Below, in pieces: positions 1,103 to 61,900 of a DNA stretch of 64,000 nt. The number at the start of each line of letters is the position of its first letter. Position 1 is the first letter of the stretch. Below the pieces are notes generated by a model that searched no databases, had not been told where the DNA came from, and saw nothing but the letters and a program-made list of their open reading frames with translations. The translations under genes were made by a program, and so were the position numbers. Location: NCBI GenBank assembly GCA_040357565.1, contig JBDODJ010000020.1; one strand, given 5' to 3'. The DNA is from Cercozoa sp. M6MM (Eukaryota; Protista; Endomyxa: Ascetosporea).

Positions 1103-4100
1103 ATGACAACGCTGACGGCAGCGCAGGCTGGAACCTTACGCTCATGTCCGCTCTCGGGTACTCGGTTGTATCATTTATTTCCTATCATTTATTTCCTATC
1201 ATTTATTTCCCAGTCATTATTTCTCAAGTCGTTGATGACAATTCACTCACTGTAGCCTCCGAAATGGAAGAGTACGCTCGATTCGTCGAACTTGACGACG
1301 AAACGAAGTCGCCAAAGCAACACGTGCGTTTTTTTGGGACACTGGTGAAACATCAAGCGTCTGTTTGATGTGATGTGCAGCGCGAGTTGCTCAAGGACCT
1401 GCTCCGAGGTCTCGGTGACATTGGCAAGGGCGATGATGGGCCCACACGGCGGCATAAGTGGAGTTGGGTGATTGAGAACATGCTAGTTCTGCCGTTGGTG
1501 CAGAATCCAACCTTAACGAAAACGCTGGTCTCAATTCGCAACTGGCAAACTGTACTCTTATCTTTTGACTTGCTGTGTAAAGAAATGTGTGTACGTTTAT
1601 ATTGCTACTATAGTCACTGGTTCGTCTAGTGTTTGCCTCGATGGACTTGCCGCTGGTGAGTGTGCCGAGAGATGCGGAGAAAGATAGCGACGACGAAAAC
1701 TTCGGCTTGCTGACCAAGAAGAGCTGCATCGGTCGCGAGGTGCAGGACCGGCAGAATTTTCGGCACGTGCGGCGCGTCATCAAGTCGCAGTCGCGCCTGT
1801 TCTCGCTGCTGATGGTGATCTTTACGCAGGTGCACTACTCGGTGTTCTGCAACACGCAGGAGCGCTTCTCGCTAACCGACATTCCCGAGAAGTTCCAGTT
1901 CACGGCGCCCAAGCAGAACGGCGGCACTTTCGACACTCTCGTACACAATATATTTTCGTACAAAATATATTTTGTCTCTAATCGTGGTTTCTGAAAGTAT
2001 CAGTTTTCTGAAAGTATCAGTTTCTGAAAGTATCAGTTTTGCTTGTGTAACGTTACAGCTGCGTTCGATGACGTCGCTGTTCTCGCAGACAGGCGGCTGG
2101 ACAACTCTGTCGGTGCCGATCGGGCGCCTGCTGCTGCTGTCCTTGTTGAGCAAAGTGTCGAAAAACTACCGCGAAATCTCTCGCGACTACAGGCTTCCGC
2201 ACGTGCGTTTTACTCTGCCATCCTTGACGGAATGTGTTGACCTTCGTTTTCCTTGGTTCGTTTGCAGTGGCAGAATCTGCTCTCACTGCTTGCAGTCGTG
2301 GAAAGCTTCATTCTGCATCGCGCTCGGTCGACGAAACTCTCGCTCACACGGGTTTCTTTTCATTCTTTTAAACTCAGTATTCTTGTCGATTCGATTCTTA
2401 TTTTTTAGTCGCTTCCGCGCGGCTCGTCGTCCTTCGACGATGCTGTGTCCACTCCGACACCCACAGTACTTCATGCGCTGTCTGCCCCAAGAGAAAAAGA
2501 AAGAAACCTGTGTGTTTCTGCAGAGACGCAAGTCGTTCTGGAGGAAAGAAGGCGACTCGTCCATTGATCCCATTGTTACTACGCAGTTTGGTACCGAACG
2601 CCTGACACTCTGGAAGAAACGCTAGAGAAACAGTTTTCTTTTTTTTTGCAGATTTACCGGCGAGCTCGACACCCAAAAAGAGCGCGAAGAAGAAGGCGCA
2701 AGTTGCTTCCGATCTTGGTAATAGCACACAACAAAATTGAGTCTTCCACTAACATCAAAATCCGCATTCGTCGCTGTCTGTAGACCCTTTGAACCGACGT
2801 GTGTTCCTTCGAATTGCGAGTGATTTAAATTGCACCGAAGGTTTGTTTTTTTTCCCGCACTTCGAAGCTGTGCCTTTCACACGCATGCATTGGCTCTCTT
2901 TCGATCGGTGCAGACTTGGCTCTCGTCCGATTGGTGCTGCGACTGCTTCAAAAAGAGCTCCGCGTTGATGGCATGTACGCACGGTTCGCAACGGTTCGGT
3001 TTTCCCTGCAAGTTTGCAGTTGCACACATGCAATTTACCTAAGTGTAGGTTAGCGAGGCTTCCGACAAGAAATTAAAAGCGTATTTTGCTTCAGAGTTTC
3101 TCAAGATTTTTGTTTTTGTTTTTGCTTTTGACCCGAGGTGGTGTGTGAAAAATAGAAAGGTGCGCCGACTGGACGAATTGCTGAATGCAGAGCGCGAGTT
3201 TTTCGAAGAGTTGCACCGGTTTCTAGCGAATGTGCTGGCGTCACGTTCGCTTTCGAGTAGGCTTTTTCTGCTCTCTGGCTTTTGGGGGGCGAGTCGAGTG
3301 ATATTGTTTTGTGTGTTTGCTCAGGTGACAAGCGTCGTGAGAAAGTGGGGCAGGCATTGGAGCAGATGGCGCTTGCCACTGCGCAGGTATAGCCTAACTG
3401 TCAGTTTGTGTGCATATCAAAATCTTGTTGGTTGGACAGAGAGCGGTTCTAAAGAAGCAGTCATCGGCAGGCCGCATGGCCACGATTAAAGGTAAGTCAC
3501 GCACCTCAATGTCGGCCGAAGTAAGCTCTGCCGTGCGCTTCCTTAAACGAGTAAGACACCAGTTCTCCTTGCTTAGTTTATTTTTACATCATTCTACTTT
3601 GAATTGTTGCTTGTTAGGTCGCACTGGCGTCGCTACGCGACAGGCGGCACGCTGAAAGTGTCGATGATGACCATGTACATCCATAAGTTTCTCGTACTAC
3701 TGTTGCTGTTGTATTTGTGTGTGTGTGTGTGTGATTGGTAGGGTCTTCATCGCGTACTGAGTCTCCAGTTACGTCTCATGCAGCAGCGACAGGAAGAAGC
3801 TGCTGCTGCAGAAGAAAGTGAGGAGGACAACTGGTGGACCGACCCACAGGTGGCCGACAACGTCTCCTTGTTCGCCTTTTGCCGCGTGCGCACGCGCAGC
3901 GACTCTGTCTCCGTACATTTATGTTTAGCAGTCTCCGCGCGGACAGAGGAATCAATGGAATGCAAAACAGAGTGGCGACGAACTGCTGCGCCGACAGCCA
4001 CGGCGGCCGCTGCGCGAAATTCGCCGGAGTGCCCGTCTTGAAGGGTAAACCCTTTGCCCTTTACCCCCCTCCCCCTTACTTCCCGCAGTGTGCTACGACA

Positions 4101-4339
4101 GCGACTGGCCAGCATGCCTGCCATGCGCACGCCCCTCAATGTACACACTGATAAGGATTAATGTATACAAGTATTAATGTATATAAGTATTAATGTATAC
4201 AAGTATTAATGTACTCTGATGTGCATATGAACAGAGAGCGAGTTTCGCCACCGACGTCGTCGACGTGAGTGTACAGCTGCCGCCCACGCGGTCGCGACTC
4301 GCCTCTGTGTGCGTTGTGCCCCTTCCTACCCCATGCATT

Positions 4340-4392
<53 letters not shown>

Positions 4393-4402
4393 NNNNNNNN
4401 NN

Positions 4403-4928: not shown

Positions 4929-6762
4929 TCAGCTAGCGGAGAGATCCAGACGGCTCAGACAGGCGTCGAAAGCAGGCACCGACAGGAGCCACTCGTCCAT
5001 GTCGCGGCTGCAGAGAACCTCATTTTTACCCCCCCCCCGTGGTGGGGGCGCGGCCCGGCCCCCCCCCCCCGACTCTTGTTACCACTGAAGACGCAAAGCC
5101 GGCACGTCGTGCACCAGAGTGAGCGTGATGTCGCCATGTGTCGACGGTTGCCTCCATTGGAGATCCTCACCGTCGCAGGTGTCACTGACGGTTCGATCGC
5201 CCATGCGATCACTCATACGATCACTGATGCGATCAGTGTCGGAACTGATGCCGAACCGTGCCACAGCGTGACGGTGTAGTCGACGGTGGACCACGTGATG
5301 AACCGTCCGAGTCAGCACATGTGTAGCATCGCACCGTAGCCACCGTCGCCACAGCACCGTCAACTGATCGATCGTTTCACCGTCATGATCACTGACGGTT
5401 TGATCACTGACGGTTTGATCACTGACGGTTTGATCGGTGCGACGCAGTGTGACGTCGTCATAGGCGCGCGTGAAGCACAGCGACGCCTCGACTCCGGCAT
5501 CCGCGCGGAAGTGTAATGTCCGCGCGGACGCCTCCCACAGCGCCGTGAAGCGCTGCAGTGGCTCGCGCGTTCGCTAGTCAAACCAATTGGAGAGGGGGTG
5601 GGGGGGGGGTAAAACAGCCTACATTAATCGACATGACGAGGTCGAGGCCGCTCTGCGTCGACAGAAGCGCGGCCACCTGACGCAACAAGAGACGCCGCTG
5701 CTTGCGCCGCACCTGAGAGGGGTGGGGGGTGAAAGGGGTAAGGGGGGGGGTAAAACTACCTGCTGCAAAAGCTGCGAGGCATCGGTGCCGCTTTCTCTCG
5801 ACGGCGTCAGTGACACGCCATCCGGTGTCATGTGCAGTGCACAGATTCCCTCCTTCTGCGTGACACAGAAACAACAACAACAGAAATACAACAACAACAG
5901 AACAACAACAACAGAAATACAACAACAGAAATACAACAAAATAACAAGCGCACCGATGCTGTATCCGCGCGGAGATCGGCCACCAGGATGCTCGGCAACG
6001 ACACTCGGCCCACGCGGATGCCGCCCTGTTCTCGGCAAAAATAAAAAACAACAACAAAAACAACAACCTAAAAACAACAACAATTTCGTACCTCGCACAA
6101 ATGCCGCACGTCATGCGCTGCGCGCGCAAACTGATTCGCGCGTTTCTCAAGTTGCGTCCGCGCGGAAGCCAAAATGTCGGCGGCGCTGTCTGCGCGGACA
6201 GCATGGTTCGCGCGAACGGCGCGTCGCGTCGCTTGGCGCAGCGTTGTTGTGATCGCTTCGTCGTCCGCGCGGACGTCCGGCGGGCCTTCCTCGCGGATGA
6301 GCGCGCGAAGATCGGCGTCGGCACCTTGACGCCGGTGCATTCGCTGCAGTGACACGGCACCACCTGTCCAGTCAACAACAAAACAGCATTCGCATTTTCA
6401 TGCGTCCGCGCGGGAGCAGCCTGGATACCAGGACGCATCATGCGCGCAAGTTGGGCCAGCAGGTGCATGTCTTGATGTGCTTGAGACAGGTGCATCCGCG
6501 CGGAGGCACGGAGAGACTCGGCGGAGGAAGTCTGCGACCGCGCGGACGTGCTGACCGACTCGTCGCTGTCGTCGCTGTCGCGCTGCCGCTGGTGCTGACG
6601 GTAGCGACGGTCCACGGCCACGAAGAAACGCTCCAGCGGCGTCAACGCCGCAGGCAATGTCCGCGCGGATGGGTCAGCTGGAATCTCCTTGCACAGTTGC
6701 GCATCCAGCGACACTGACACATCTGACAGGTCGATCACACCGTCGGCATCGGCGTTTCTCAT
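4929..6762 (-). CDS. MED17: Mediator subunit 17-like
   Basis: The N-terminal DVSVSLDAQL...LERFFVAVDRR, then ARMHLSQAHQDMHLLAQL (cf. plant LQLAHQELSVIIDL) and AADILASARTQLEK (cf. metazoan AAQILLKGAERL) fall in the MED17 order. Spliced over about 6 exons; C-terminal end approximate. Confidence 0.5.
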
Positions 6763-17333: not shown

Positions 17334-20300
17334 TTAGGCAGCATGTTCGCAGGCACCGTTGGACAGACAGCGTCCGGTGGGACCGCAGTGACTTTGCATA
17401 CTGCAACACATGCATCAATTATTACTGTAGAGTCGAACTGATTAGAGTCTACAGTGTGTGTACCTGCAGACACAGTGACCCGTGATGCCACAGCCGTCGT
17501 AGGACTGTACAATCACAGTCGAGTATTGTTATACTATCTATTGGAGTAGGTTTCACTAACTTATATATATCTATGTATATTATAAAACTGATAAACAAAC
17601 AAATAACTGTATTTTTGCATACATACGAATATACTATACATCATTCTAGGTCGGACAGTGCAGTAGACATGTACACACAGTACATAGTATGTGTACGTAT
17701 GGACAGGTACTACTAGTAAGTGTACCAAATCGAGAGTGTCGTCACGATGGGTCACGACAAAGTTGCGCACGAATTCGATGTTGAACAGTCCGCGCGGATC
17801 GCGAATCTGCCGCTCCCTGACCCAACGGAAACAAGGTTCATCCCCTCTCTAGACAGTACACATTACAGTGGTTGTTACGACTCGAATTGACTCGACTGAG
17901 GCGGTTGAAACTGCGACTTACCCGCCTGGGGGGGGGGGGGNNNNNNNNNNNNNNNNNNNNNNNNNNNNNNNNNNNNNNNNNNNNNNNNNNNNNNNNNNNN
18001 NNNNNNNNNNNNNNNNNNNNNNNNNNNNNNNNNNNNNNNNCCCTCCTCTTTATCCCTTACCACCCCCTTTACCCACCCTGAACCCCTTTACCCCCCCCCC
18101 CCCCTACCAAGGTGTCCTGCATGGCCTGTTCACGGGAGGCCAGTGTGTGCGACGGAATGTGAGTGGCGATCTCCAGCACCGCTCTCTATACGGTCAGAGT
18201 TTTACGGGCCTGTTTACCCCCCCGGTATACTACCCCCTACCTTGCCTCTGGTCGGTCCGAGCAGCGCCTTGCCAGGTGAGTTCATCAGTCGCACGTGCAG
18301 TGACACTCCATAAGAGGCCAGACTACAATGGTCCATTCGTACGGTACGTACAGTTGGACTGTACAGTTGTACAGTACAGTTGTACAGTACAGTGAGTGGT
18401 ACCAGGCACCGTCGAAACGGGAGAAACGCTGCCGCTCAAAGTCGACGAGAATGTCGCCGAGTCGATCCAGCGGCACCGACACGTCCAAATTCGTGTAGCG
18501 ACGCGACGCCGATGCCGTGCCGTTCTGTCCGCGCGGACGTAATCCTCCCCCTTGACCCCTTGGCCCCCTTAACTCAGACCTCAAGTGTAGAAAGGTACCA
18601 GGACAGTGTACTGGTAGCCACACGAGTTGAGATCGTCGCACAGCGAGGACATGCTGATGCGGTCGTAGTAACCCAAGGCAGGGAAACTCCCGGCACCGAA
18701 CAAGTAGGGCGACGTCAGCACCTGCGCCATGTAGGACGTCGTTGCTGCGGGGCAGGGGTAAGGGGGTAAACAGGGGGGTAAATAGGGGGGTAAACAGGGG
18801 GTAAAACCGCAAGACTGCGCCACGAAGGCCGCCGTGTCGTTTTGCGCGGCTACAATGGCATCGAACTGCTGCACCTCTGCCTGTCCAGTTGTACAGTCCA
18901 CTAGTACAGTCCACTAGTGCAGTCCACTAGTACAGTCCACTAGTACAGTCCACTAGTACAGTCCAGTTGTACAGTCCACTAGTACAGTACAGTTGTACAG
19001 TACAGTTGTACCTCTCGATCGGCGACACTCTGCGGTGCAAAGAAGTAGTTCACTGCCGTGAGATCGCTCAGCGTCTTGTTGCGACTGGCCACTGCAGTGC
19101 CGAGTTATACCCCCCTAGTTCCCTTTACCCCCCTATTTACCCCCTACCCTACCCTAAGCCCTACCAGCAGCGGCAGCCTCGCCAATCTTGTCGATGCAAA
19201 AAAGCACGAATTTGTGTTGTTCCGGGAACCAGTTGAACTGTCCGTTGGTACAGTCGGACTCGATCTAGTACACAGTTGTACAGACTCTGTCGTACTATGT
19301 GTACTACTGTATCGGATCAAGATCATTGTACCTGTTGAATCATACTGTCCAGCACTGTTGTCATTGTGTCGTTCGTGTACTCCAGTGTGTACCTGAGGGG
19401 GGAGGGGTTAGGGGGTAAACTAGGGGGCAAAACAGTTACGTTTGCGCAGTGGCGGCCTGTCGCCGTTCGATGCGCAGCGTCACCGATGTCAGCACGCCGA
19501 GTGCGCCAAAGTTAACGGCGTGCTTTGAGGCACTCTGCTTCTGGTAGGTCTGCAACTGTCCTCACACACACTGTATCGTTACAAGCTGTACTAGGACTCA
19601 GTTTGGGTACATTTCCAATGCCATCGACGACGTTGAAAGCAGTCACCAGATCAGCTACTGTCGCTGCCTCTTTCAGCACCTATTGATGCAGATAATACCG
19701 AATATTTATGGTACATTTGTATAGATATGGTAAGTGTATTATAAGTGTACACTGCCATGAGCGCCGGTAACAACTGCCCCACACCTGCACTCAGGTCATG
19801 TCAGTGTCCAGTAAAGTAGGTAGTAGATAGAGCAAGTGCTACGTCGACATGGCACTGAACATTGGACCGAACGGCAGCGAATAATTCGCCTGTCGCAGAA
19901 CTGCCAAAACCTGCGCAACACAAGCGTTTTTCCAGTACAACTGTACAAACGGACAGTTTTGCGTCACTGCCGTGTACTGTACTGTACCTGCGAAAGTGTA
20001 GTGCCGCAGCCTGCTGTCACCTCCATCGTTTCTGTGTTGATCTCGATCTGGCTCAAGTCTCCTGGGGGCAAGTTTTTATTTTACGTATGCTAACAGAACC
20101 CCCTAGAGTACTAAAGCAGGCCACAATACCGGCGGGAGCATCATTGGGCAGTCGAATCAGCCACTTCTCGTGCGTGTCCAGGCGACCCGGCAGTTGACTG
20201 TGAGTTCAGTTTTTAATAAAAAACAGCTGGACAAGCTCAAACTTTACGTACCGGTCTAAGGCATCCGGCTGCTCCGATGGGCACCACGAAAACGTCGGCG

Positions 20301-23775: not shown

Positions 23776-25595
23776 ATGCGACTGGAGTACCCAGTTGCAG
23801 CAATTCCACTGTCTGTTCCAGGCAACATCTACACTGGAACCGAACTGGGCAAGGTGGCTTTCGACATTCAAACCGTCTTGTCGAGTGTGTTCACCGAATT
23901 GGGTACAGTACAACAGAAAACTAGAGAAACTAGTTGTCTGTGTATCGTATTGTATATTTCTGTCTCATGACTTAGATCCGACTGAAATTAATACACTCAA
24001 TCGCAACTGCGCCATGATCGGGTACAGTGCCGGTTTCGGATGCTATCGTTGCTAACTGGCAGTTTGGTCCGTCATATTGTTAACTGACAGGACTGGAGGC
24101 TTCGGTCAGGTAGTGCTGCCACTCGACGCACTGCCCGAGTGGCTATTGCTTCGACTGGTCAGTTTTGCTTTTGACCAAACTGAGTACAAAAACAAGTCTT
24201 GTAGAGCGTGCTGGAGACGCCAAATGTCGCACAAGAACAGCAGTAAGCTGTTTAACCTTCAAGCAAGTTAGTTTCTTACTCAGTTCTTGTTGTTGGCACC
24301 AGAGTGGTCGTCAAAATTATCACAAGCCAACGCAGTTTTGATCAAGAGTTGAGAGCATTGCAGTACATCATGCACCTTGGCAGTGGTAGATTACAGATGA
24401 AAACCCAACTGAACTGCAAAAAGCTGTATTTGAGACTTGAGAAGGCGACCCAGCAACGAACAATCTGCTGCCAGTGCTTGGAATGACACGTGGAAACGAG
24501 CCCGGATACCCGAGTGCCCTCGTGTATCCCTACCTTTCGGGAGGTTCGTGTACGTTGGTGTCTCTATCGTTCAAACAAAGCGGTCGTAGGGTGGAAGTTT
24601 CTTGCAGTGCACGATGCTTTGGCTTCTAATGCCAAGTTCTTCATTTCGCACGTCGGCCAACTCACCTTGCAGGTCAGTCAAAGCTGTGATTTGCGTCGAT
24701 CTGAATTGAATGACTAATTGCTACTGTGAAGGGCATTCGATTAATGCGTGAAATCACCCATGGGGTTATTGCACTGCACGCCAAGGGTCTCGTGCATCGC
24801 GACATCAAGGAAGCCAACGTGGTGCTGTCGCGAGATTTCTCAGACGCGCGACTGATCGACTACGGAGTGACTGTGCCGCAGGGCTCGTCCAACACTGTGG
24901 CCGGCGCATTCTCCTACTGGCCGCCCGAGTTGTTCCCCCGCTGGGAAGACGGGCAGCCGCACGCGTAAAATGAACTTTCTTTGACTGAGTCAGACAGTAT
25001 TCAGTTGTTTTTCCTGGAACTGGTTTAAAACTGAGTTTGTGTAGTGCACAAGTGACACAAGACGTGTATGCACTCGGAGTGGTCATGTACAACATTCTCG
25101 TTGGCGTTCCTGCTTCCTTCGGTTCGCCCGGGGCGTACGGTACGAAAATTGTATCCAGTATATACTAACTGAAACTAAACTGAAAGCAAGATTTGCGACC
25201 GGAATCCGATCGATTTTCAGACCAACTGAGCGTGTGGAAGACGGAAGGACGCCTCGAAGCGTTGGCGCCAGTCCTGCATCAGTTTGACACTGAAACACAG
25301 CGGGTGTTGACTCACATGTTGACACGTCAAGTGCACATCCGCGCGGAGCAGGCCGCAAATCACGTAGCTTTCTCCAAATTGCTTTTCGACTTTACTCACT
25401 CTGCTTTTGGGTAGTTCGAGATGGCTCGTGCATGGCTTGACAAATGCGAACAGCAACTGGTGCCCTTGTGTTCAGTTTCATTTGATTTGCGTACTGTGCT
25501 GTAAATTTATTACACATTGTGTTATTTTTGTGATGTTGAGGCAGCTGCAGCCACAGCAGGCGGAGGTCAGTTACTCTGTCTCGCAGGTACACTGA
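23776..25595 (+). CDS. Ser/Thr protein kinase
   Basis: GTGGFGQV, VVVK, ELRAL, LVHRDIKEANVVL, LIDYG, AGAFSYWPPE and DVYALGVVMYNILVG across spliced exons. Confidence 0.9.
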
Positions 25596-32296: not shown

Positions 32297-35200
32297 ATGA
32301 GCCGATATCGCAAGTCGTTTATCAGTGGCGGTAGTGGGGTGCAGCTGAGTACTACTTCCGTGTACAATTAACCTTTGGTTTTTAATCGTGTCGAAGTTGT
32401 CAATCCGAGTTGTGACACCAGATATTTGGTGTCGGGCATGCAAACTGACCGAGCGCAGTATGCGACCAAGTGGCTCAAGGTGCACGCTTTCTTGCTGTTT
32501 GAGAGTTGGATAGCAATTTATTTTGTGCAGACGGAGCTACAGATGCTAGCGGCCGAGCAATGTGGCCACACAGATGTTGAAGTGCAGTTGCCGTTTGCGC
32601 AAGCTGTGCGTGCAGCCATGCTGATGCAAGGTCTGCCCACGAACGAGACGACACTGAGTGCAGAGACGCAAAAGTACTGGCCGCTGTTTGCTCAGCTGCT
32701 GCACTACTTCCGACAAGACCAGGCCAAGCGCGAGGCCACACTCGCTTGCAGTCGTAACTTTAATTGCTTGCTTTCAACTCTCTCGTTTTTGGATGAGCTC
32801 TGTTTTCTTTTCGAGTCAGAGCAGCCTCAGATGATCCAAGCACGTCGACACGGTTATCAATACGTTCAGCAGCAACTCTGGCTTCAGCAGCAGCAGCAGC
32901 AGCAGCAAACGCAGGATCAAACGCAGCAGAAGAAACGCTCCCAACACCAGGTCCGCGCGGATGCCGAAACAACAGAAAACGAGCCCAAACGACGGCGTGT
33001 TGTGCGACGCAAAGTTAAACAAACGCAGCAGAAGCAACCACAACAACAGGAACCTGCAGTGGGACAAGTCACTGTCGTTCAGGTGGCGACCCAAGACTCC
33101 GTCCGCGCGGATGCCGCTGAAGACGACAAGAACTTGCTGCCGTTGGGATCGGTTGACTTGTGGTCCGACTACGTGGTGACACACTCCAGCAACGAGCTTT
33201 TCACGCAGTCGTACCTTGACGCCTTTTGAATTCTTGAAAAAAAGTATCTTACTTTTTCATTCTTTGCAGAGTGACCGCGAAAACTGGAGTGCCCGTTCCG
33301 CGCTTTCATGGTTCCAAACGGTACGTACTGTGTTCTTAGATCCCTAGCGTTGATTAAACTGAGCTATTCATTTTGTTTAGACGACGCTGGCGCGAAAAGG
33401 CGCTTTCTGCTCTGGCCGACAGCGGTCAGGTACAGGAAAATACCAAAAAGGCACAACAACGTTCTTCAATTTGTGACTGGCAGGCCGACTGGGCTCAAGA
33501 CGATGTCTACGCCGAATGTGGTGTTCGTGTCGACGTTATGGCGGCTTGGCAGCAGCTTTTGGCAATTCGACACGTGCGGTCGCCGGAAGATGCGCGTGTG
33601 GAGGTGCTTTTGAGCTAAAACGAAAGAATTTGCATGTGATGTTCTTTTGTTCAACAAAATAGGAAGGAATAAAAGCAGTGCGCTCCCTGCTCGAGTCTCA
33701 ACCGGACGATATTGGCGTGGCACCACCAAAGCAAGTGAAACTTGTCGACTTTGAAAACGCGGAACTGCCATTTTTACGATCGGTAAATCTTTGCTCTTTC
33801 GGGTTAACTTTTCCTTCGTTCGTTGAAGCTTCGTTCGTTGAAGTTTTATTTTTTTCGCAGGCAGCCATGATGTTTGAACTTCGAAAGTTCGTTGCAACGG
33901 TATTCTTTGTGGTTGTTGCAACTAGTCAACTGACAGTGTTTTCCTTTTTTCAAGAACTTGCGCGGCTTCAACGAGGATTTGTCAGCGCCGAAACTCGCAA
34001 GATTCGCTCGTCGTCTTTGTAAACGTTTGCCAGGTGTGTTCTTCGCTTTCTCTTGCTTTGTTGTAGTTTACCGAATGTGTAGGTCCGCAACCGGGCGTAT
34101 TGGCGCGAGACAACCTGGAAGTGCTGCGATCTCACATGTACACTGTTTGTACTATTGAACAGAATGAAAATTGGGATTCTGCGCTTGTGTTGTTGCAGGT
34201 ACTATGTGACAGAAAAGAGTGACGGTTTGCGCTTTGTCTTGATGAAAGCTGGTGCCTTTGTGTATGAGTTAGTCGACGGATTTCTCTGCTTTCATTTTTT
34301 CTTTTTGAACTTAGATTTCGGCTGGGCGCTGATTTCGCGTCGTTTCGATTTCTTCACGTTCAACGTAGCAACGTTTTTTGTTTTCTTGGCATGTCTGTTC
34401 CAGTTTTGTTATTTCCTGCAGGTGGAAGATGGCGGATACAAATACGGCATTCCGGACACCACACCTGTATGGCTTTGTTGTTATCGCGCTTAAATACCAA
34501 ACTCAGGGTTCGTACAGGATGGCTGTTCGGCGCTGACGTTGCTGGACGGCGAGTTGCTGCGACACCCGGGTGCTCAAAGCTTATTTTCTTCGCTGCGTTT
34601 CGACAAACGCACGATTTGACAGAAAAGCGACACTTGCACACGTTTCTCGTCTACGATGCAGCAGTGTAGCTTTCACTTTGGGATGCGTTTAATTTGTCGG
34701 TGTGCTGATGTGGCTATTGTGGTTAGTGTGCTGGACCGGCATGTGCACCAGCTGCCGCTTTTTGAGCGACTTGAGCATGTACGCTAATTGATTGCTTTGT
34801 TTGTTTCGAGTGTGTGAATGTGTTTATCTGTAGGTGAAGCCTCTGGTGGAACAGTTCGAACGTGCTTTCAACAGTGGCGCCAATGTCGACGGCTTTCCGT
34901 TCCTGCTGAAACTGAAGCAGGTTTTCTTTCTCTTCTGTACCCTTGCGTTCTTTCCTTTACATCGATAATGCCTCAGATGTGGCCAGCGCCGAGGGTGGAG
35001 GAATGTTTGCGTCGCATCAAGCAAGTTCCGAACGCGCATTGGGTATTATTGTATCTTTCCCTGCCTCCTTGCCCTTTCACCTGCCTCCCGCAGAAATATC
35101 GCGATGCAAGTCGCTCAAACGGCAATGACGGTCTCGTTTTCACACGTGCCAATGCGCCCTATGTCGAGGTACCGCTTTGTTAGTTGCTTTTGTGTGCATT

Positions 35201-35546: not shown

Positions 35547-36310
35547 TGTATGTATGTATGCATGCACAATACTGAACTGATCAGATCTCTGGGTGACCGG
35601 ACCCAACGAACAGGAGGTGCGTCTCACCACTGCTGTCGTGCCTGGTACACATTTCCTGCACAATGGACCGGTCGTATGGACTGCCCGATTGTACAGAGGA
35701 CAGTCTGGCCGGGCAACAGTGGCAAACTGTGCTGCAGCCCTTCCTCGCACGCGAGCGTACTTGTTGTTTGTTGTCGTGTGTTTGTTGATGCTGAACGCAT
35801 CCGCGCGGACAGACGAATCGGTCGAGAGCAAAGAAAGCGCCGACCCGCACCTCGACCTGCATGTAGTGTGTGTGTGTTTGTTTTTGTGTTGTGGGTACCC
35901 TCCCCCTTGTGTTGCACAGAGTGTGATTGTGGAAGTCTGCTTCGACGGCAGTCACTGGCGCCCGCTGCTCGCGCGTACGGACAAAAAGATGCCGAACTTT
36001 GTCGCTGTGGCCACGGACACTCTGGTAGACCGCTGTGGCTATGCCACCTGTCGCCCTTGTCTAGGAGATTGTTCCCTTCTGTTTTCCCAGATGGTGGCGG
36101 CGCAAAACCTCGCCGTGGACGAAGTCGTGCGTGCTGCCAAGGTGAGTCTCTCTGCGCTGACTAGAGAGTGTGGACAGATCAGCAGTACCATGTCGAGTGT
36201 ATGTACAGATGGGACTGACGCAGTGGAGCGTCAAGGAGCGAAGTCGCTGCGCTGGTGCCGAGGTCGCCGATCATCCCGACGATATCGCTGCTCGCGCTGT
36301 TCCTGTTTGA
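32297..36310 (+). CDS. mRNA capping guanylyltransferase with long unassigned N-terminal region
   Basis: Motif I YYVTEKSDG, III TLLDGEL, IIIa FLVYD, IV NDGLVF, V LVKYKP and VI RTDKKMPN. The GTase part lies at ~34000-36140. Joining of the 32297-33230 ORF to it is uncertain. Confidence 0.85.
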
Positions 36311-39453: not shown

Positions 39454-40275
39454 TATATATATATATAATAAAATATATATTATATTATATATACATATAT
39501 ATATATAATAAAATATATATTATATTATATATACATATATATAATAAAATCTATAGTATACTGGATATATATACAGGTATCTACAGGTACAGATACTAGT
39601 AAAGCACCCTCATCAGTCTCTCCAGTGGCTACAGCGGCCGGCAACTGTTTCCGCAGCGCCGCCGGCACCGACAAAAAATCGATCAACGCCGCGTTGGAAC
39701 GCAGTGCACGCAGGCGACTAACGGGGGGGGGGGGGTAAAGTGGTTGAAGGGAGAGCGGGAGTAAAACACGGGAACACGGGGGACGAAAAGAGTATAAGGA
39801 AGGTTGAAAGCACCACAACTTGACGAGATACTCGTGCAGCTTTTTGGAGCGCGTTTCCACGAAATCCGGCGACAGATGGCCACGCAGTTTCTTGGGCGGA
39901 ATCGCCGGCAAGCCTGCACGACTCGGCAGGTCCTACAGGCAGCACCAATCAGTTCAAACATGGCTACAAACAGGATCAAAACGCACCTTGGCCAGCGTCT
40001 GGTGCAGCTGGTAGAAATCCGAGTAACGCTTGAAGAAACGCCACGTGTCACCGCCTCGCCATCCGGCCTCGATTTCGTACATCTAGATCCATACAGAGCC
40101 ACTTCAACTGAGAGAAAATTACACAGCTTTAATGTACAACAAAAGGACGGCTCGTGTGCTTGAGAATCATGCGATTGCAGGCGGTGAATTTCACCTATTC
40201 GGCATCACAATTATTGCCCTCCACAAAATCACATAAGGATCTCGATTGCACCTGCAGATTTTCTAGTTTAAGCAT
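36543..40275 (-). CDS. PX domain + helical region + START/SRPBCC-like C-terminal domain protein
   Basis: PX: VMYEIEAG-WRFFKRYSDFYQLHQTL-LPAIPPKK-SPDFVETRSKKLHEYL-LIDFL. The C-terminus VELVRKLSQRSVLLHY...SIVWHSVELP...GALFVQPVS-CRLTLVA is START-like (less certain). Confidence 0.75.
38060..38560. repeat. AT-rich (TAAA/CAAA)n intronic microsatellite
   Basis: About 500-bp AT-rich intron built largely of AAAT/AAAC units. Confidence 0.9.
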
Positions 40276-40435: not shown

Positions 40436-41205
40436 ATGTCAGAAACGTCGCTTGTACGAGCAAATGAGAGGATACGAGATCTCGAGCGGCAGTTACGTGA
40501 GGTGGACTTGTTTTGGGTGCTAGCAGTCGCCAGTGACAATGGCTCTTTGTGATGCAGGCGCACAAGCAGTACGAAGAGTTGGCCGAAGACTACAGAATTC
40601 GCGGGCAGCTTCTGCTGAGAGCGCGAGAGCGACTGGGTCGTCCTGCTGCGAAACGTCGGTGTCTCGGTGGGAGAGAATTGTCACCAGCCAGGCCAGCAGA
40701 GGCTGAGCAGAAGGGGGAACACAAGGAGAGACCAGAGGAAGAGACAGAAGTTCCTGTCACCTTCTCGCTCGAGTTCGAGTTCGACAGCAGCGACCGCGAG
40801 AGCGATGGCGACACGAGACACACGACTGACCCGAGGCGACACGAGACACCCTCGGTGGTCGAGATCAGTGACAGCGACAGTGACTCCTGCGAGCAGTCAA
40901 AGCCTTCCGCGCGGAAACAGTCGAAAACTCCCGTACGGAAGCAGACAAGACCGGCAGCAAGCGTCCGCGCGGATGCTGACGCCTCGGCGGCCTGTAGGAT
41001 CTGCACGCGGCTGCGGCAGCTCGGTGTCGACCCGAGCGACGTCTGCAAGGTCTGCAATCGCCGCCGCAAACGCGCCGCTCGCTACGCGCTCGAGCAGGCC
41101 GCTCAGGACGCTTCGGCGGACACTGCGTTGGCTACGCCGAGGAGAAACGCTCCGCAGACACTCCGACACGCTGCCACACCCAGTCACTACTGGTCTATCG
41201 ACTAG
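40436..41205 (+). CDS. CtIP/Ctp1/Sae2-like DNA end-resection factor
   Basis: Two exons. N-terminal coiled coil (ERIRDLERQLRE-HKQYEELAEDY), disordered middle, CRIC, CKVCNRRR (RHR-equivalent) and terminal TPSHYWSID (cf. TPxxFWxxxF). Confidence 0.6.
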
Positions 41206-42583: not shown

Positions 42584-44213
42584 ATGCTGTCACCTCCGCG
42601 CGGAAGGCAGCTCGGCTCACTGGGTTTCATGCTGGCCGTGGTGTGCCTGCTGGCCGTGTATGTTGTTTTACCCACACGCCAAGGAGTTTTAAGTGACCTG
42701 ACTCCGTTCCAAGGTGAAATAAAACAAGACAGTTCATATGGCTGAGTGAGTTTACTTTTGTAAGTTTTAGATCATGGTCAGCCGAGACGGAGTGCGACAC
42801 AGTTGGATGATACAGTTAAGAAACAGAAAGCCACTGTGCGCTATGTGTCCTCTATTGCGCCCGATGCTTTTGAGGTAGATTTATTGTTCCCTGTTTACCC
42901 CTGTTTAGCCATGTTCCATCCCCCAGAGCGAATTCAAAGACGTGATGGAGGCCGTGAGTGTGACGCCGTCGCTCTGCATTGACGAGGTCTGGACGGGCTT
43001 GCGCTCGCTGCGCAAGCTCGACGATGTTCGTATTCACGCGGACCACACGTCGCGCGTAGCTCCCCCCCCCCCCCCCGTGTACCCCCTACCACTTTACCCC
43101 CCCCCCCCCCCCNNNNNNNNNNNNNNNNNNNNNNNNNNNNNNNNNNNNNNNNNNNNNNNNNNNNNNNNNNNNNNNNNNNNNNNNNNNNNNNNNNNNNNNN
43201 NNNNNNNNNNNNCACAGTCCATTTGGACACACAATGGGGACCATCTGGACAGAATGTGGGTCCACTTGTACCAGATGCGACTCGCGGAACCAGTCGACGC
43301 AGCGTTGGGAACATGTCGGTACTGCGGGGGGGGGGGGGGGGAACAAGGGGGGTAAAGGTTGTGTGTATGGGGGGGCGGGAGGGTTAAACCTCCTGGTGAG
43401 AGGCAACTCTCGCGCAGCTAGATCGCGGTCAAAATGAGTCACTTCGACTCGCGTCGCATTCGCAAACACCATGGTGTCGTTCACCTAGACGTGCCTACTT
43501 ATCTCCATACACTCCCCTGTACCCGCTGTAGTACCAGCACAATGTCCTGTCTCTGCAAGAGCTCTTCGATAGCGCTGTCGTCGGCATCTGGGGGGGGGGG
43601 GGGGTAGAGGATAAGGGAAGCCAGAGAAGCGGTAAAAAGAGGGGTAAAGGTACACAAGAGGCCGGGCACACCGGCCAGTTTGAGCGACTCGGCCCACCGA
43701 ACGGTACCTTGCAGAAACACCAGCAACTCCTTCGGCGAGGACTACATTATACTCCCCTTTTACCTCCCCCCCCCCAAAACCCCCCTAGCACGATCTGCTG
43801 CACGTCAATGATCTGCGTAGTTCCATCCCATGTTTACCTCTTCCCCTTCCTGTTGTATCTCCCTGTTTAGTCCCTTTATCCCCCTGTTGTGTAGGCTACG
43901 CAGTGGTCGCACAAGCGACGAGGAAAGACGGTTTTTTGGAGAAACGCGGATACCGCTATGCGATGCTCATGGATGCTGGTGGGGGGCCCCCCCCCCCCCG
44001 TTACCTTTTATTTACCCCCTGCCCCTTGCAGCGGACGCGCGGCTGAGCAGCAACCCGTTCATAGCGATTCGCGCGGCCGAGAGGAGTCTGTCGGTGCTGC
44101 CGCTGTTCGTGGGCTACGAGGCCAATGCCGACATCACGGGTCAGTGGATGGAAGAGCGTTTCAGTGGTTTTACCCCCCTTGTTTACCCCCAGATTGGGCG
44201 CGCCGGTCACCCG

Positions 44214-44245
<32 letters not shown>

Positions 44246-44799
44246 ACTTTACCCTCCCTCAGAGTGTTTCCCAACACGCAAGCGGCCAAGCTGGATGTCG
44301 AGTCCGCGCGGACAGCTGGCGCTGTACAACGCCGGCGTCGTCGGCGGCAGTGTCGGCTCCATGCATGCCTTCGCAGAGGCAGTGACTGAGTTCTTCCCGT
44401 GCGTGTTGAGTCAGTTCGGTGACAGTGACACACGGCGCAGCCAGCTGCGACTGTAATTTTACCCCTCCCCCATCTGAGCCCCCATCCCACCTCCATCCTA
44501 CCTACCCCATCTTAGCTCCCTCACCCCCCTAGAGAGCCTACGCGTTCCTGCGACATGATAGCCGCCAACGTGCTGGTGAGCTCGATTCGAAAGTCGCCGA
44601 CACTTGCTTTCGACGTCACTGACGGCGCTCTCGGTGGTACACTATGGACTGCTCACGTTTTCTTTTTTAAATTAGGGAGTGCTGGGTCATTTTAGTCGAG
44701 TCGTCCGACAAGAATGACTGCGCCGTGTATGCAGGCTCGCCGTTCGTGTCGCGCTTTAGGTACGCCGATCGCTGTGGGGCCATTGTGTTCCACAAGTGA
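42584..44799 (+). CDS. Type II membrane glycosyltransferase-like protein; block 43213-~43745 lies on the opposite strand
   Basis: Anchor MLSPPRGRQLGSLGFMLAVVCLLAV; HVNDLRY, MLMDAAD-NPF, LFVGYE, WMEERF-EC, LYNAGVVGG, CDMIAANV, GSPFVSRF and VFHK* give a GT-A-like DxxD/NAG/DM pattern. Confidence 0.6.
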
Positions 44800-56988: not shown

Positions 56989-57379
56989 ATGCACGGAACA
57001 ACGCACATCCCGGACAGAGCGACTAGTACCGTATCCTGCTCATGATATCGTTCAGTCGCTGTCTGGTCTTGTTGATCTGGAAACAAGCAAAGCAGTATCC
57101 GCGCGGACGGAGCAAAACTCACAAAAGACAGGAAGAAACGCTTTTTCTTACCTTCTTGGCATTTAGCAGAAGCTCTTGCTGAAGTTCCGCGCGTCGTTGC
57201 TCGCCGTCCTGAAGGAAGCTCTCGACGGTACTCGCGGCTTCCTTAAGATTTCGCACTCTGTCACAAAAAGCGCAGTTTGCACAATCTCTTCACTCTCCTG
57301 CCAAGAGAATGCGTTACATGTCATCTTGAATTTCGGCTGCGTCACCCAACTCGTCGGTAAATCGACGAGGCAAGCTCAT
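56879..57379 (-). CDS. KXD1: KxDL motif protein / BORC subunit 4-like
   Basis: Four exons, ~94 aa. ELGDAAEIQ...ESF...QR...RQRLNDIMSRIRRIEQALVR aligns without gaps to the remembered KXD1 core (Q, F, R, L, I, RIR and L conserved). The KxDL motif is degenerate (RQRL). Confidence 0.65.
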
Positions 57380-58319: not shown

Positions 58320-58936
58320 GCGCGCCACGCATGTGTCTTCTGCGTGTGCGCGTGAGTGCCCGTGGTCTCCTTCGTTGCCGCCGCCGTGCGTGATTATTCC
58401 GCCGACTGTGCCTTCGATCCGATGGGACGCATGCGTGCACCGCCTCACGTCGACGACACACGTTTCACAACAAAAATAAACACTCCCCACGTCTTCGTTA
58501 GTTTTGGTGGAACTAATGCAGTTTGCGTTTCCTGTATCATGAAAGTACTTTGTACTTTACTACGATAGTTTAGTCGAGTCCTTTCAAGAGCCAAGAATAG
58601 ATAGTCTCGGTGATCGATCGATATTCTGTCACAATCGACTGTGGAAATAGTCGCTCACGCCGATCGACCGGTATAGCACTCGTAAAATCGTGTGTGGGCG
58701 TTTAGAAGACTGAAGGGCGCTGGCCCAATTGATTTCGAAAAAGATTATCAACTGGTGTCCGTCTCGCGTCCTGGAGCTGCAGCAGCGTGTGCTAAGACGT
58801 GCTAGCAGCCGTGTGAGACTTGTATCACAGTAGCAACGACAATTGAGACACAGTGCAACTCGAAAGTGTGTGCCGTGTTGAGTGTTGGATTGAGTGACCC
58901 ACGCCCTGAGCCAGAGTTGCGGAAGGAAGACATCGG

Positions 58937-61900
58937 ATGGGCGGCGAGGTCAAGCCTGATGACCGGCGCTTCGTGGGCAAAGTGCTCGGCAAGCAGCAGA
59001 CGCCGCGTTTCTTTGAATGGTAGTCTGCCCCCTCCTCCCGTCTCAGTGTTGATTCGATGTGCATGTATGTGTTGTCTGACTGCACAGGTGCATGTGTTCC
59101 TACGGCGGTGCCAAGAACGAGCGCGCCAAGAAAGAGCGAATTCTGGTAGGCTTGTGTGTGTACTCTGCCTTTAGTATGTCACAACCCATGCTATTTGCAC
59201 ACAGGTCATCAGCGACCTTCGCGTACTCGTGATTAGCAAGCGCAAACTCAGCGGGTACGCACTGGCTACGCTGTTTTGACTTGAGTCTATCTGTACTGAA
59301 GTACATTTGTACCTGAGTACATTGGTATCTGAGTACATTGGTACCTGGGTACACTTGTACAGACTGTCTGTTCGCGAGTCGCACCCAGTATCGGCACTGC
59401 GCATCTTCAAGATCGACGAGGCTCCTATGTCAACCAAGAAGAGTAGCTCTCCTGACTGGGGAGGGGGGTAAAGGGGGGGGGGGGTAAGCCTTTGCCTCTG
59501 CGTAGAGAACGCGTCGTCGGTGCAAGCCACCATGGTGTTCGGACAGGCAGACGAGCTGCTTTCGGTACTTGGTTCTCACCCCCTTCACCCATCCTCCTTC
59601 ACTCATGACATGTGGACAGGTGGCATGTGAGAAAGACATGGCTTCTCGCATCGCCTGTGCTTTGGTAGCTTGTTTACTCCCTCCGTTGCCCTTCCTTCTT
59701 GTTACCTTCATGCTATTCCCCCATGCCCTATGTTATTCCCCCATGCCCTATGTTATTCCCCATGCCCCTCTGCTATTCCCCATGATATTTTCCACGTTAT
59801 TCCCGGATGTACAACAGATGAAGTCGAGTGCACTGGCGACGGCACTGTGGCCCGTCGACAAACGGCCGTGTTTCGCACTTGACGAGGTTGCTTGTTTCTT
59901 TATCCCCCTTTGCCCCCCGTTTATTCCCTTTGTATCCTCTTGTCACCCTCTCCACTCAGGAGTACCTGACTGGCTACATCGAAACACCGATCGGCCCGCG
60001 GACAGCTCTGGCACACGCCTACGATTGTGTACAATTGGACCGACCTGTTGTACAAACGGACAAGGTGACAGAGTAGCCACTGTTGTTATTGTTGCGTAGG
60101 CGTGCGACGCTTTGGGCGTAGCGTCCAAGGAGACCATTCGCGCGGAACTGCAGGGCGATGAGGACCCAGTGCAGGGTGCGCAGACCCGTCGGCGTCCACG
60201 CGGACAGACGCTTGACCTGCGACGTGCCATTCTCGGCGCTGACGACGAGCAGAACGGCATCGACATCGACAGCGCCGCCGACAGCGGCAGCACCGACGCC
60301 GTCGACGACAATGCTCGCAGCGACACCGACAAAAGCAGCAACACCGAGGTAGAGATCTTGTCTTTTCTGCCTTCTCTGCCTTCCCTGCCTTCTCTGCCTT
60401 CCCTGCCTTCTCTGCCGTCCGAGTGATCTGTTTGTCCCTTCTTCTGCTTACAGGGCGAAGCAGCGACGGCAACAGCACCGGTGTGCTCGATTCCGACCGT
60501 TGAGTTGTGCAACCACCTGCGTGCACTCTTGCCGGCACTTCACTACTCCAATGTACACTTTGCTCTGCCGTGAGTTGAGTTGACTTAAGTTGACTTGAGT
60601 TGACTTGAGTTGACTTGAGTTGCTTTGCGTTGGCAGGTTTATAACGGCATCGAAGTCAAATCACTCCCAATCGGTACAGTCTGCTCTGTGATGCCTCCAT
60701 GTCTCTTTTAGATACCTCCGATGCTCAGGCGACGAAGGTCTCGCTCTACTTTCGCAGTTCCTTCGCGATCGAGAGTCCGCGCGGAAGCCGGTGTGTTTTG
60801 GCCCGTGTTTTACGATTTCAGTGTTTTAAATTAACTTTGACGTATTAGGTGCGTGTGCTGCGACTCGTCGATGTACGAGCGGGCAAGCAAGGCTTCTCTA
60901 CATTGTTTCAAGCACTTACCGAGGTGCACCAGAGGTACCTTCCGTTCTTGCTTTTTGTTTTTGTGAATGAATGAATTGGTGTGCTTCCGCAGCGAAAGTA
61001 GCGGCCTCAGTCTGCAGGAACTTGATCTCTCAGAAAACGCGCTCGCTGTGAGCCTGGACTTCTCGTTTTTGCGATTCATGCGCTTGCGGTACTTTTCGGG
61101 AGGCTCAAGTGTCCTAGTTTGTCCAGCAGATGGCTCACTTTCTTACAGACACCTACGATTGCGTCGGTGCGATTTGACGTCGTCCAAAGCAACGGCGCCC
61201 ATTCTGCGTGAGTCATTTTGTGTTCTAAAGCTCTTACAGGAGTTTCTGACTGTAGAATCACTCGTGGAGACGCACGAGACACGTCAGGTACTCCAGTTAT
61301 TTCAAACTCCGTATAACACCCAGTTTAACCGAATAACCCTCACAGGCGCTCGTGTCGCTCGATCTGTCGTACAACAGCATCAAACGCAAGTCATCACATG
61401 TGGTAGTACTCAGTTTCGAGTAGTACTCAGTTTCACTGTTTAACAAAGGTTATGTGTTTGTATTTTGAACGTTTTTCGACCTCTTGGTTAGGTGGCCGAA
61501 TTCTTGGAGAAGTTGAGTGATTCGCACGACACACGACTGCGTTTCTTGTCGCTTGCACACACAGTACCTGTTCTCACATACACTGTACGACTTAAGAAAC
61601 GACAAATTAACTCGACAGGGCTGTGATCTGCAAGCTGTGCTTTCTTCGCTCCATGCGTCGCGTTTCCTCCGAACACGAGTGCTGCGTGCGCTTTCGTTGA
61701 GAGGGTAAACTCTCTCTTTCTTCGTGTGCCCACGCAGACCTGCACTCATTTAAATGAGCAGATGCAAGATGTCAGACGGTGCAGCAGCCATCTTGGCGCG
61801 CATCATCGCAACGACATTCTCATTGTGCGTCAGTCAATATTGAAAATTGTTTTGGAAGAAACGCTGTCTCGTGGATGGACTCGTTTTGTTTCCAGGTGTC

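Follow-up and report, generated by a model that had tools for sequence, protein, structure and literature searches.

In the 64,000-nt window analysed here, from Cercozoa sp. M6MM (now Lemnamoeba sinaloensis, a marine amoeba of the Rhizaria), the 10-bp palindrome TCCGCGCGGA is present in exactly 21 exact copies, all at the positions given by an earlier note on this DNA, which had claimed at least that number. The copies are listed with the strand of the predicted exon or gene, the peptide encoded and the codon phase.

3934..3943: exact copy, S-A-R-T, phase 0, in predicted exon 3778-4026 (+)
5500..6669 (-): hotspot of seven exact and four one-mismatch copies (6189, 6288, 6405, 6537) in 1.2 kb
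5500..5509: exact copy, F-R-A-D, phase 1, in exon 5085-5573 (-) of a MED17-like gene (NCBI protein P0001)
5519..5528: exact copy, S-A-R-T, phase 0, in the MED17-like exon 5085-5573 (-), 9 nt from the copy at 5500..5509
5964..5973: exact copy, L-R-A-D, phase 1, in exon 5954-6025 (-) of the MED17-like gene
6157..6166: exact copy, S-A-R-T, phase 0, in exon 6092-6361 (-) of the MED17-like gene
6264..6273: exact copy, V-R-A-D, phase 1, in exon 6092-6361 (-) of the MED17-like gene
6495..6504: exact copy, S-A-R-M, phase 0, in exon 6427-6762 (-) of the MED17-like gene
6660..6669: exact copy, S-A-R-T, phase 0, in exon 6427-6762 (-) of the MED17-like gene
17789..17798: exact copy, D-P-R-G, phase 2, in predicted exon 17726-17816 (-)
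18528..18537: exact intronic copy, 3 nt upstream of the CAG acceptor of the predicted intron 18525-18598 (-; 74 nt)
25338..25347: exact copy outside every predicted gene
31654..31663: exact copy, C-P-R-G, phase 2, in predicted exon 31582-31782 (-), earlier called an intron
32952..32961: exact copy, V-R-A-D, phase 1, in predicted exon 32438-33208 (+)
33102..33111: exact copy, V-R-A-D, phase 1, in predicted exon 32438-33208 (+)
35800..35809: exact copy, S-A-R-T, phase 0, in predicted exon 35587-35862 (+)
40906..40915: exact copy, S-A-R-K, phase 0, in predicted single-exon gene 40552-41205 (+)
40964..40973: exact copy, V-R-A-D, phase 1, in gene 40552-41205 (+), 48 nt from the copy at 40906..40915
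42595..42604: exact copy outside predicted genes, ~350 nt upstream of predicted gene 42945-44799 (+)
44303..44312: exact copy, S-P-R-G, phase 2, in predicted exon 44265-44450 (+)
57098..57107: exact copy outside predicted genes, earlier called an intron
60776..60785: exact copy between predicted genes 58937-60573 and 62592-63934

These sites comprise eight predicted genes and four sites outside predicted genes, so that the earlier figure of about 11 genes was roughly right. The MED17-like hotspot gene is rich in Arg, Ala, Asp and Ser and little conserved, and no Pfam family matched it. Of three sites previously assigned to introns, that at 18528 does fall within a predicted intron, whereas 31654 lies in a predicted exon and 57098 outside predicted genes. 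The predicted intron 18525-18598 has an in-frame stop after its donor; homology gave no support for it.

The palindrome was counted across the 23.6 Mb assembly of the nuclear genome, where it occurs in 2,239 exact copies, or 1 per 10.5 kb. A codon-aware 3-periodic Markov model predicts ~21 copies and the reversed word occurs 33 times; the excess is roughly 100-fold. Dinucleotide shuffles of the window never gave more than one copy, with a mean of 0.08. An unbiased 264-kb sample (the window plus positions 1-200000 of contig C1) contained 34 copies, compared with 0.27 per strand under an order-4 Markov model, and predicted CDSs in the sample held 23 copies compared with 0.37 after codon shuffling. 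The earlier note had proposed these Markov and codon-shuffled backgrounds as a check and had asked whether other CG-rich 10-mers might be equally frequent; the observed/expected ratio was far above 1 against both, and among non-SSR 10-bp palindromes in the sample TCCGCGCGGA was the sole outlier, with a runner-up of six copies. It is also the most frequent of all 10-mers in predicted exons. The draft was assembled from short reads and contains many gaps. All copies lie at least 143 nt from assembly gaps, so gap continuity is irrelevant to the count. These counts confirm that TCCGCGCGGA is a genuine palindrome iterated at the DNA level throughout the nuclear genome; it goes unmentioned in the 2026 genome paper of L. 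sinaloensis.

Codon phases among 36 exonic sites were 12/14/10, which bears out the claim that all three frames are used. SAR peptides were spelled TCC-GCG-CGG in 9 of 24 cases (0.1 expected), and the TCCGCGCGGA codons were used for 10 of 19 hRA[DE] peptides (0.8 expected) and 5 of 14 PRG peptides (0.07 expected). Within fixed peptides these codons were over-used 12- to 160-fold, and TCC, CGG and GGA are minor codons. The hRA[DE] and PRG peptides themselves were about twice as frequent as under amino-acid shuffling (19 vs 7.6 and 14 vs 7.2, respectively).

Genomic compartments were assigned with a self-trained gene finder, which labelled 57 % of the DNA as genic compared with 84 % in the genome paper. 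In the 264-kb sample, predicted exons held 23 copies (0.15-0.37 expected), predicted introns two (0.008 expected) and unassigned DNA nine (0.10 expected), the last two numbers being small and both dependent on the gene finder. The gain was alike in the three compartments, at roughly 100-fold. Predicted exons held 36 of 50 classified copies (72 %), and this exon excess vanished once GC and CpG content were modelled. Positions were uniform along predicted gene bodies, with no promoter or 5' bias; the flanks were neither AT-rich nor skewed, with no flank of the nucleosome-free type. Some copies lie in apparently non-coding spacers that bear SSRs or C-runs or are T-rich. The statement that neither a protein motif nor codon bias explains the sites is upheld by the codon shuffling, the minor codons and the use of all phases. 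The pattern shows a DNA-level force that overrides codon choice and alters protein sequences in a eukaryote.

Homologue alignments of an NFS1 exon and of a KDSR/TSC10 exon were ungapped over the TCCGCGCGGA site, which fell at variable residues in both. At these two testable sites the alignments show an apparent origin by point substitution, not insertion. The flanks are weakly symmetric (G-Y-G, core, C-R-C) and otherwise share no sequence; the 12-mer GTCCGCGCGGAC accounts for 17 % of copies compared with 6 % under random flanks. The earlier view that this is not a transposon agrees with the unrelated flanks and the two ungapped alignments. A mobile element or MITE was considered and rejected, there being no shared body, TIRs, TSD or indel relative to homologues.

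The 30 one-mismatch words combined numbered 33 in the 264-kb sample, compared with 34 exact copies. Genome-wide there were 2,848 one-mismatch variants where 728-887 were expected (~4-fold, an excess of ~2,100), and a first mismatch is penalised far more heavily than a second. Their profile is uneven, favouring the outer positions and C7-to-T; the most enriched variant is CpG-to-TpG at C7 only (~485 copies vs ~41 expected), and comparable decay was not seen at the other two CpGs of the palindrome. This profile accords with graded recognition as well as with decay. Copies form homotypic clusters, with 121 pairs within 60 nt compared with ~13 expected. Genes of 8-residue repeats carry 12-15 copies per 0.5 kb, and motif-less repeats in these genes spell the identical hRAE peptide with different codons; such redundant arrays argue for an independent pressure on each site, not a need for spaced sites. 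On contig C1 the large-scale spacing was Poisson-like and irregular (gaps computed by hand).

Candidate proteins were sought in a six-frame search, for which multi-exon NFS1, recovered exon by exon, served as positive control. No cytosine-5 methylase (PF00145) or N4/N6 methylase (PF01555) was found in this search, whose sensitivity is limited by short exons, and no Vsr. CpG observed/expected was 1.06, i.e. not depleted. Methylase-coupled repair, one of the activities put forward earlier, is therefore unsupported. A Zn2Cys6 reader, also put forward, had no match in the six-frame search, with the control for this family (Zn_clus) likewise matching nowhere. An E2F_TDP domain gene is present at G000:C21:49403-49570. 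As a whole the earlier interpretation stands in its analogy to HIP1 and uptake sequences and in setting aside transposons and codon bias, but not in the specific mechanisms it offered.

We infer that a DNA-binding protein reads TCCGCGCGGA. Our preferred, unproven reading is a context-blind, site-specific fixation bias (molecular drive) acting via a dimeric protein, to which we give a probability of about one-half. Near-cognate sequences appear to be turned into TCCGCGCGGA by point substitution in any frame, against codon preference and in any compartment. The 10-bp core with its symmetric flanks (~14-16 bp, G-Y-G, core, C-R-C) would be read by a homodimer, a sequence-specific DNA-binding or DNA-processing protein, and recognition would slightly and uniformly favour the transmission or fixation of each motif-creating change, with a scaled coefficient of ~3.4-5.5. 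Repair or gene conversion biased towards the allele carrying TCCGCGCGGA is a plausible route. Later decay by ordinary mutation would leave the ~2,100 excess one-mismatch relatives, and the proteome would bear the cost as extra S-A-R, (F/L/I/V)-R-A-(D/E) and P-R-G peptides, which would lie mainly where conservation is weak. The fuller version, a eukaryotic molecular drive in which a dimeric nuclear protein biases repair, gene conversion or transmission towards DNA with its own site, is put forward only tentatively. We know of no biased-repair enzyme of this specificity in eukaryotes. Counted against drive is the report that L. sinaloensis was haploid at harvest (PMC13746701), which bears on the opportunity for allelic conversion.

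The main rival to drive, which we regard as unlikely, is that natural selection maintains each copy as a binding site of some abundant protein (a chromatin, architectural or transcription factor, or one acting at replication origins), such as an E2F/DP-type factor or a CGCG-box reader. Homodimers typically read such symmetrically flanked 10-bp palindromes, E2F/DP proteins bind a CGCGCG core and the E2F_TDP gene exists; the homotypic clusters, a mean spacing of ~10 kb (on the order of replicon size) and a graded one-mismatch profile resembling a binding-energy profile also fit. However, the T-rich flank of E2F sites is missing, and the copies are uniform along genes, without promoter or 5' bias or AT-rich or nucleosome-free flanks. 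Nor would selected sites predict a similar gain in exons (all phases), introns and other DNA, functionally redundant 12-15-copy arrays inside coding repeats, or Poisson-like spacing on C1, and a first mismatch costlier than the second is the reverse of what a saturating binding landscape would give. At equilibrium the copy numbers expected from drive and from weak selection across the genome are equal, so the two are not separable here.

The remaining explanations are each improbable. In a HIP1-type methylase ratchet, the model of Elhai (2015) for cyanobacterial HIPs (PMC4390886), sites are marked by an orphan methyltransferase, and near-misses become sites through methyl-directed mismatch repair or T:G repair. 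The C7 CpG-to-TpG variant could mark a site-specific 5-methylcytosine, but the undepleted CpG, the other two CpGs and a search that recovered NFS1 without PF00145, PF01555 or Vsr make such a ratchet improbable. Slightly more doubtful still is an RNA element, with UCCGCGCGGA in mature mRNA as a binding or modification site: it would account for the 72 % exonic copies, and a palindrome is present in the transcript from either strand, but the exon excess is lost once GC and CpG are modelled, copies occur in predicted introns and non-coding-looking spacers, and the symmetric flanks indicate duplex DNA. Palindromes are typical of transposon ends, and a gap-rich draft invites suspicion of an assembly or library artefact; yet a mobile-element footprint or core (MITE, RPE-like in-frame palindromic insert or excision scar) or an artefact is very improbable, given flanks sharing ~3 weakly preferred bases and nothing more, homologue alignments ungapped over sites, one annotated CDS that holds seven copies when each 10-bp insert would shift the frame, and copies not adjacent to gaps. 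The idea that the copies are a side effect of composition, of codon pairs or of a common peptide motif is refuted at the level tested: preferred h-R-A-D/E codons do approach TCCGCGCGGA and Arg/Ala-rich repeat proteins carry many copies, but codon shuffling and the 3-periodic Markov model fall far short of the counts, codon over-use in fixed peptides extends to minor codons, and all phases and non-coding DNA are affected.

To our knowledge, iterated oligonucleotides (HIP1, USS/DUS, Chi) have so far been a bacterial phenomenon, and a clear-cut example in a eukaryote would mean that natural transformation is not required for such signals, nor apparently is a methylase. If drive is the cause, TCCGCGCGGA would be a 'self' signal like HIP, USS or Chi that operates with no transformation and, it seems, no DNA methylation, and that invades genes at a measurable proteome cost. 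Drive versus selection is directly testable because L. sinaloensis is culturable and reported haploid, with a 27 Mb genome on six chromosomes and published HiFi data. The palindrome is also usable as a compact species marker and should be kept in mind by gene annotators as a source of recurrent peptides.

Among known systems, Rickettsia palindromic elements and fungal mitochondrial GC-cluster palindromes are, like TCCGCGCGGA, tolerated in protein-coding genes; these selfish DNAs are 30-150-bp mobile inserts, whereas TCCGCGCGGA is a 10-bp word that appears to arise by substitution. The yeast PDRE (TCCGCGGA), the Zn2Cys6 site of Pdr1/Pdr3, and the vertebrate CGCG element (TCTCGCGAGA) of BANP/ZBTB33 are palindromic TCCG...CGGA or TC..CGCG..GA sites bound by dimers, but they are promoter elements of modest copy number and TCCGCGCGGA has no promoter bias. 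E2F/DP sites (TTTSGCGC) share the CGCGCG-type core, and L. sinaloensis has an E2F_TDP gene; TCCGCGCGGA differs in its lack of a T-rich flank and of promoter location and in its ~100-fold genome-wide enrichment. A promoter transcription-factor site is not supported by the location of the copies, which were uniform along genes and 72 % exonic instead of clustering around transcription starts or between genes.

TCCGCGCGGA most closely resembles HIP1 and the uptake sequences, iterated words described to date only in bacteria, and can be viewed as their counterpart in a eukaryote. As description, the analogy drawn in the earlier note is borne out by the ~100-fold excess, frame independence, rare codons, substitution origin and approximately doubled peptides. 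We know of no natural-transformation route for an amoeba and of no eukaryotic equivalent of the uptake receptor. The USS of Pasteurellaceae and DUS of Neisseria are not palindromes and act through natural transformation, by a molecular drive exerted by a sequence-specific protein of the kind inferred for TCCGCGCGGA. They approximately double the tripeptides they encode and prefer poorly conserved genes and residues (PMC2817400); thousands of copies, a tripeptide imprint and a preference for weakly conserved genes or residues are common to both. The mechanism of HIP1 (GCGATCGC) is itself unsettled, its cause having been open for 30 years. HIP-type sequences are characterised by a cognate orphan methyltransferase that recognises the core, whereas the six-frame search, limited in sensitivity by short exons, gave no PF00145 or PF01555 match for TCCGCGCGGA, which also differs in its host (the nuclear genome of a rhizarian amoeba, not a cyanobacterium), its length of 10 bp with a CGCGCG core and its density (~1 per 10.5 kb vs ~1 per kb). 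According to Robinson (1997; cited in PMC4390886), HIP1 spreads through nucleotide substitution. Both are short, perfect palindromes, vastly over-represented and dispersed in all frames of coding DNA and in non-coding DNA, and both appear to spread by substitution, with one-off variants deviating most at the outer positions.

All 21 copies of the palindrome TCCGCGCGGA claimed for the window were found, with identical coordinates, compared with a mean of 0.08 and a maximum of one in dinucleotide-preserving shuffles. The window corresponds to C20:69315-133314 of the Cercozoa sp. M6MM assembly (23.6 Mb, 2,235 contigs), in which TCCGCGCGGA occurred 2,239 times and the reversed word (the same letters reversed without complementing, as control) 33 times. 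An unbiased 264 kb sample, comprising the window and C1:1-200000 of the same assembly, contained 34 copies against an expectation of 0.2-0.3 per strand (Markov orders 1 to 4); here the word ranked third overall among non-SSR 10-mers, and it was the top-ranked 10-mer of predicted exons. Comparison of all 1,024 10-bp palindromes left TCCGCGCGGA as the sole non-repeat outlier (34 copies; runner-up six), and a general palindrome-perfecting mutation was ruled out because this word alone stood out. Every window copy lay at least 143 nt from the nearest assembly gap, so doubtful continuity across gaps leaves the finding untouched; gene models spanning gaps were not relied upon. The feature is real, strong and new to the literature. 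Literature searches revealed no work treating this 10-mer as a genomic element, its occurrences in 27 papers all being incidental (primers, hTERT promoter), and no highly iterated palindrome (HIP) described from any eukaryote.

In October 2026 strain M6MM received the name Lemnamoeba sinaloensis (Rhizaria, Apofilosa); its reported genome of 27 Mb has 8,704 genes, is 84 % genic, averages 13 introns per gene and carries very numerous AC repeats; cells were haploid at harvest, and the words palindrome and methylation are absent from the genome paper (PMC13746701). A metagenome scan for motif pairs, aimed at relatives with a dispersed word, gave nothing but bacterial contigs of high GC and satellites with the word present by chance in their unit; the sole dispersed-looking contig (L136) had no match in the M6MM assembly. 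The satellites or tandem repeats (loci L094, L041, L113, L125/L133/L058, L042, L116 and L080) had units of 27-60 bp that include TCCGCGCGGA, some at just 40-50 % GC. The environmental contigs that carry them are unrelated, have no match in the assembly and do not represent the dispersed phenomenon.

The TCCGCGCGGA peak was sharp: within the 264 kb, 34 exact copies compared with 33 for all 30 one-mismatch words summed. Genome-wide counts are given below.

Exact and one-mismatch words in the assembly (both orientations summed; control, reversed word)
Exact word: 2,239 observed, control 33
Variants at positions 1/10: 769 observed, control 204
Variants at positions 2/9: 570 observed, control 242
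Variants at positions 3/8: 438 observed, control 210
Variants at positions 4/7: 783 observed, control 137
Variants at positions 5/6: 288 observed, control 94

A codon-aware model built for this work put the expectation at about 21 for the exact word and at 96-193 for the variants of each position pair. Since this expectation and the reversed-word controls agree, enrichment was estimated at about 100-fold for the exact word and about 4-fold for one-mismatch words. Two-mismatch words were at expectation in the window, where 60 words had up to two mismatches, compared with 29 in shuffles. Flanks were unrelated except for a weak symmetric preference (G-Y-G 5' of the core, C-R-C 3'), with GTCCGCGCGGAC making up 17 % of copies vs 6 % under random flanks; given this symmetry, recognition seems to extend over about 14-16 bp with two-fold symmetry. 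The most enriched one-mismatch variant was TCCGCGTGGA (= TCCACGCGGA), at about 485 copies (estimated from 62 of the first 100 matches listed) vs about 41 expected, or about 12-fold. It represents a CpG-to-TpG change at C7 only, the equivalent change at C5 and C3 being far less enriched, and could reflect either a cytosine modified specifically at this site or a T being tolerated there.

Window 60195: copy of TCCGCGTGGA, one-mismatch relative of TCCGCGCGGA

Genes were called with a self-training spliced HMM written for this work, which converged on G|GTA(C) donors followed by a T-rich run, YAG acceptors and pyrimidine-rich introns of median 63 nt. In its self-trained statistics (window and C1 sample), introns had 45 % GC and very low CpG (23 per kb vs 104 per kb in exons). 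For the MED17-like gene the HMM matched the exon structure annotated at NCBI; it also placed an NFS1 exon at 39727-40098 (39727-40107 by Pfam) and gave Pfam domains in the predicted frame in seven of 20 random predicted exons. It labelled just 57 % of the DNA as genic, and 'unassigned' therefore includes missed genes. Exons were searched singly against databases and joined only in scripts for codon statistics. A 394-codon open frame at 5578-6762 (-), whose 394-aa product had a single database relative, a Cercozoa sp. M6MM protein at NCBI, crosses four short introns of the MED17-like gene that were both annotated and independently predicted; at several other motif sites two to three frames were open for more than 100 codons, on both strands.

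The G-run/TAA motif GGGGGTAAA, called telomere-like but 'also within contigs' in the genome paper (PMC13746701), had 117 of its 124 copies in predicted introns, 105 of the 117 antisense by the gene finder, so that the pre-mRNA has C-run/TTTA repeats. It may be a polypyrimidine/branch-type intron signal or an introner-like family.

Window 5605, 5746, 12613-12759, 13167-13203, 18762-18774 and throughout: GGGGGTAAA copies
C1:1-200000: GGGGGTAAA copies

Fifty copies of TCCGCGCGGA were classified by the HMM as exonic (36), intronic (2) or unassigned (12). The exonic copies fell in codon phases 12/14/10, bearing out the earlier note's claim that all three coding frames are used, and copies were spread evenly along predicted genes. 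Homology support was sought for the intron at 18528 and none was found.

Copies by compartment in the unbiased 264 kb (this work's own gene finder)
Exons: 23 observed, expectation between 0.15 (Markov model) and 0.37 (shuffled codons)
Introns: 2 observed, expected 0.008
Unassigned: 9 observed, expected 0.10

The apparent exon preference was due to the GC (59 %) and CpG content of exons, and the gain over local composition was about 100-fold in every compartment. Neither an AT-rich flank nor a skew switch was seen around sites. An exonic splicing enhancer was rejected, as exon ends were avoided (6 % of copies within 15 nt vs 21 % at random).

Codon choice in predicted proteins, for the three peptides read from TCCGCGCGGA, showed that the signal lies at the nucleotide level.

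Motif codons among occurrences of each peptide
S-A-R: TCC-GCG-CGG in 9/24, expected 0.1 from codon usage
(F/L/I/V)-R-A-(D/E): motif codons in 10/19, expected 0.8 from codon usage
P-R-G: motif codons in 5/14, expected 0.07 from codon usage

The motif uses minor codons (TCC, 13 % of Ser; CGG, 11 % of Arg; GGA, 14 % of Gly), and the peptides occurred at about twice the amino-acid-shuffle level, with 19 vs 7.6 for (F/L/I/V)-R-A-(D/E) and 14 vs 7.2 for P-R-G. Scaled advantages derived from these frequencies were 3.4-5.0 in the three frames and 4.5-5.5 in non-coding DNA; given their similarity, the pressure is roughly uniform.

Sites originate through substitution. The NFS1 exon (L004:9727-9999) aligned with human NFS1 over 91 residues ungapped, with I-R-A-E at the site and I-M-K-S in the human protein, and the KDSR/TSC10 exon (L014:1137-1448) aligned over 92 residues ungapped, with its site (S-A-R-T) in a variable stretch. 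One annotated CDS holds seven in-frame copies. Motif-bearing exons tended to be less conserved (P about 0.06), with Pfam matches in 0/10 and PDB matches in 0/3, compared with Pfam matches in 7/20 random motif-free exons.

Neighbouring copies 1-60 nt apart numbered 121 pairs genome-wide vs about 13 expected, many of them in two coding arrays.

C364:1925-2498: array of about 15 exact copies, spacings multiples of 12 nt
C64:32793-33291: array of about 12 exact copies, spacings multiples of 3 nt

Both arrays encode in frame 8-residue repeats h-R-A-E-x-x-x-x (h = F/L/I/V), in which the 10-mer is exact and the spacers have diverged; array repeats without the motif write V-R-A-E as GTG-CGT-GCC-GAG. 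The window's own hotspot, the MED17-like gene (seven exact and four one-mismatch copies in 1.2 kb), is rich in R-A-D and S-A-R as the arrays are in h-R-A-E. The hotspots thus resemble regions that offer numerous near-cognate sequences under weak constraint. Where a function requires spaced sites, such arrays are redundant.

The pressure is sequence-specific, blind to frame and compartment, and acts on the DNA sequence via point substitutions. The methylase-coupled route proposed earlier found no support: six-frame genome searches gave no match to cytosine-5 methylases (PF00145), N4/N6 methylases (PF01555) or Vsr (PF03852), and CpG observed/expected was 1.06. The same six-frame method recovered the multi-exon NFS1 as a positive control. 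Profile searches of the genome with PF04471 (Mrr-type) and PF00172 (Zn2Cys6) also gave no match. We infer a homodimeric protein as the reader of the site, as we do the nature of the pressure, for which a fixation bias (molecular drive) is favoured because the pressure is uniform across contexts and opposes codon and amino-acid preferences, redundant arrays get built, large-scale spacing on C1 is Poisson-like rather than regular, and the landscape is convex, the first mismatch being far costlier than the second. Repair or conversion biased towards the site-bearing allele would be one such route.

The main rival is weak genome-wide selection for protein binding, for which the same equilibrium as under drive is predicted. 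One-mismatch copies were in excess by about 2,100, or about 140 per variant class, where simple birth with neutral decay predicts about 150, and transitions exceeded transversions about 1.7-fold among them. Ordinary mutation would erode sites that have no individual protection, and the excess and transition bias fit such decay. This fit does not settle the matter, since variation is greater at outer than at inner positions, which a recognition profile would also predict. The analogy with cyanobacterial HIP1 drawn in the earlier note is apt at the descriptive level, and the doubling of the peptides encoded by TCCGCGCGGA is the same as that reported for uptake sequences, whose encoded peptides are likewise doubled (Findlay and Redfield, PMC2817400).
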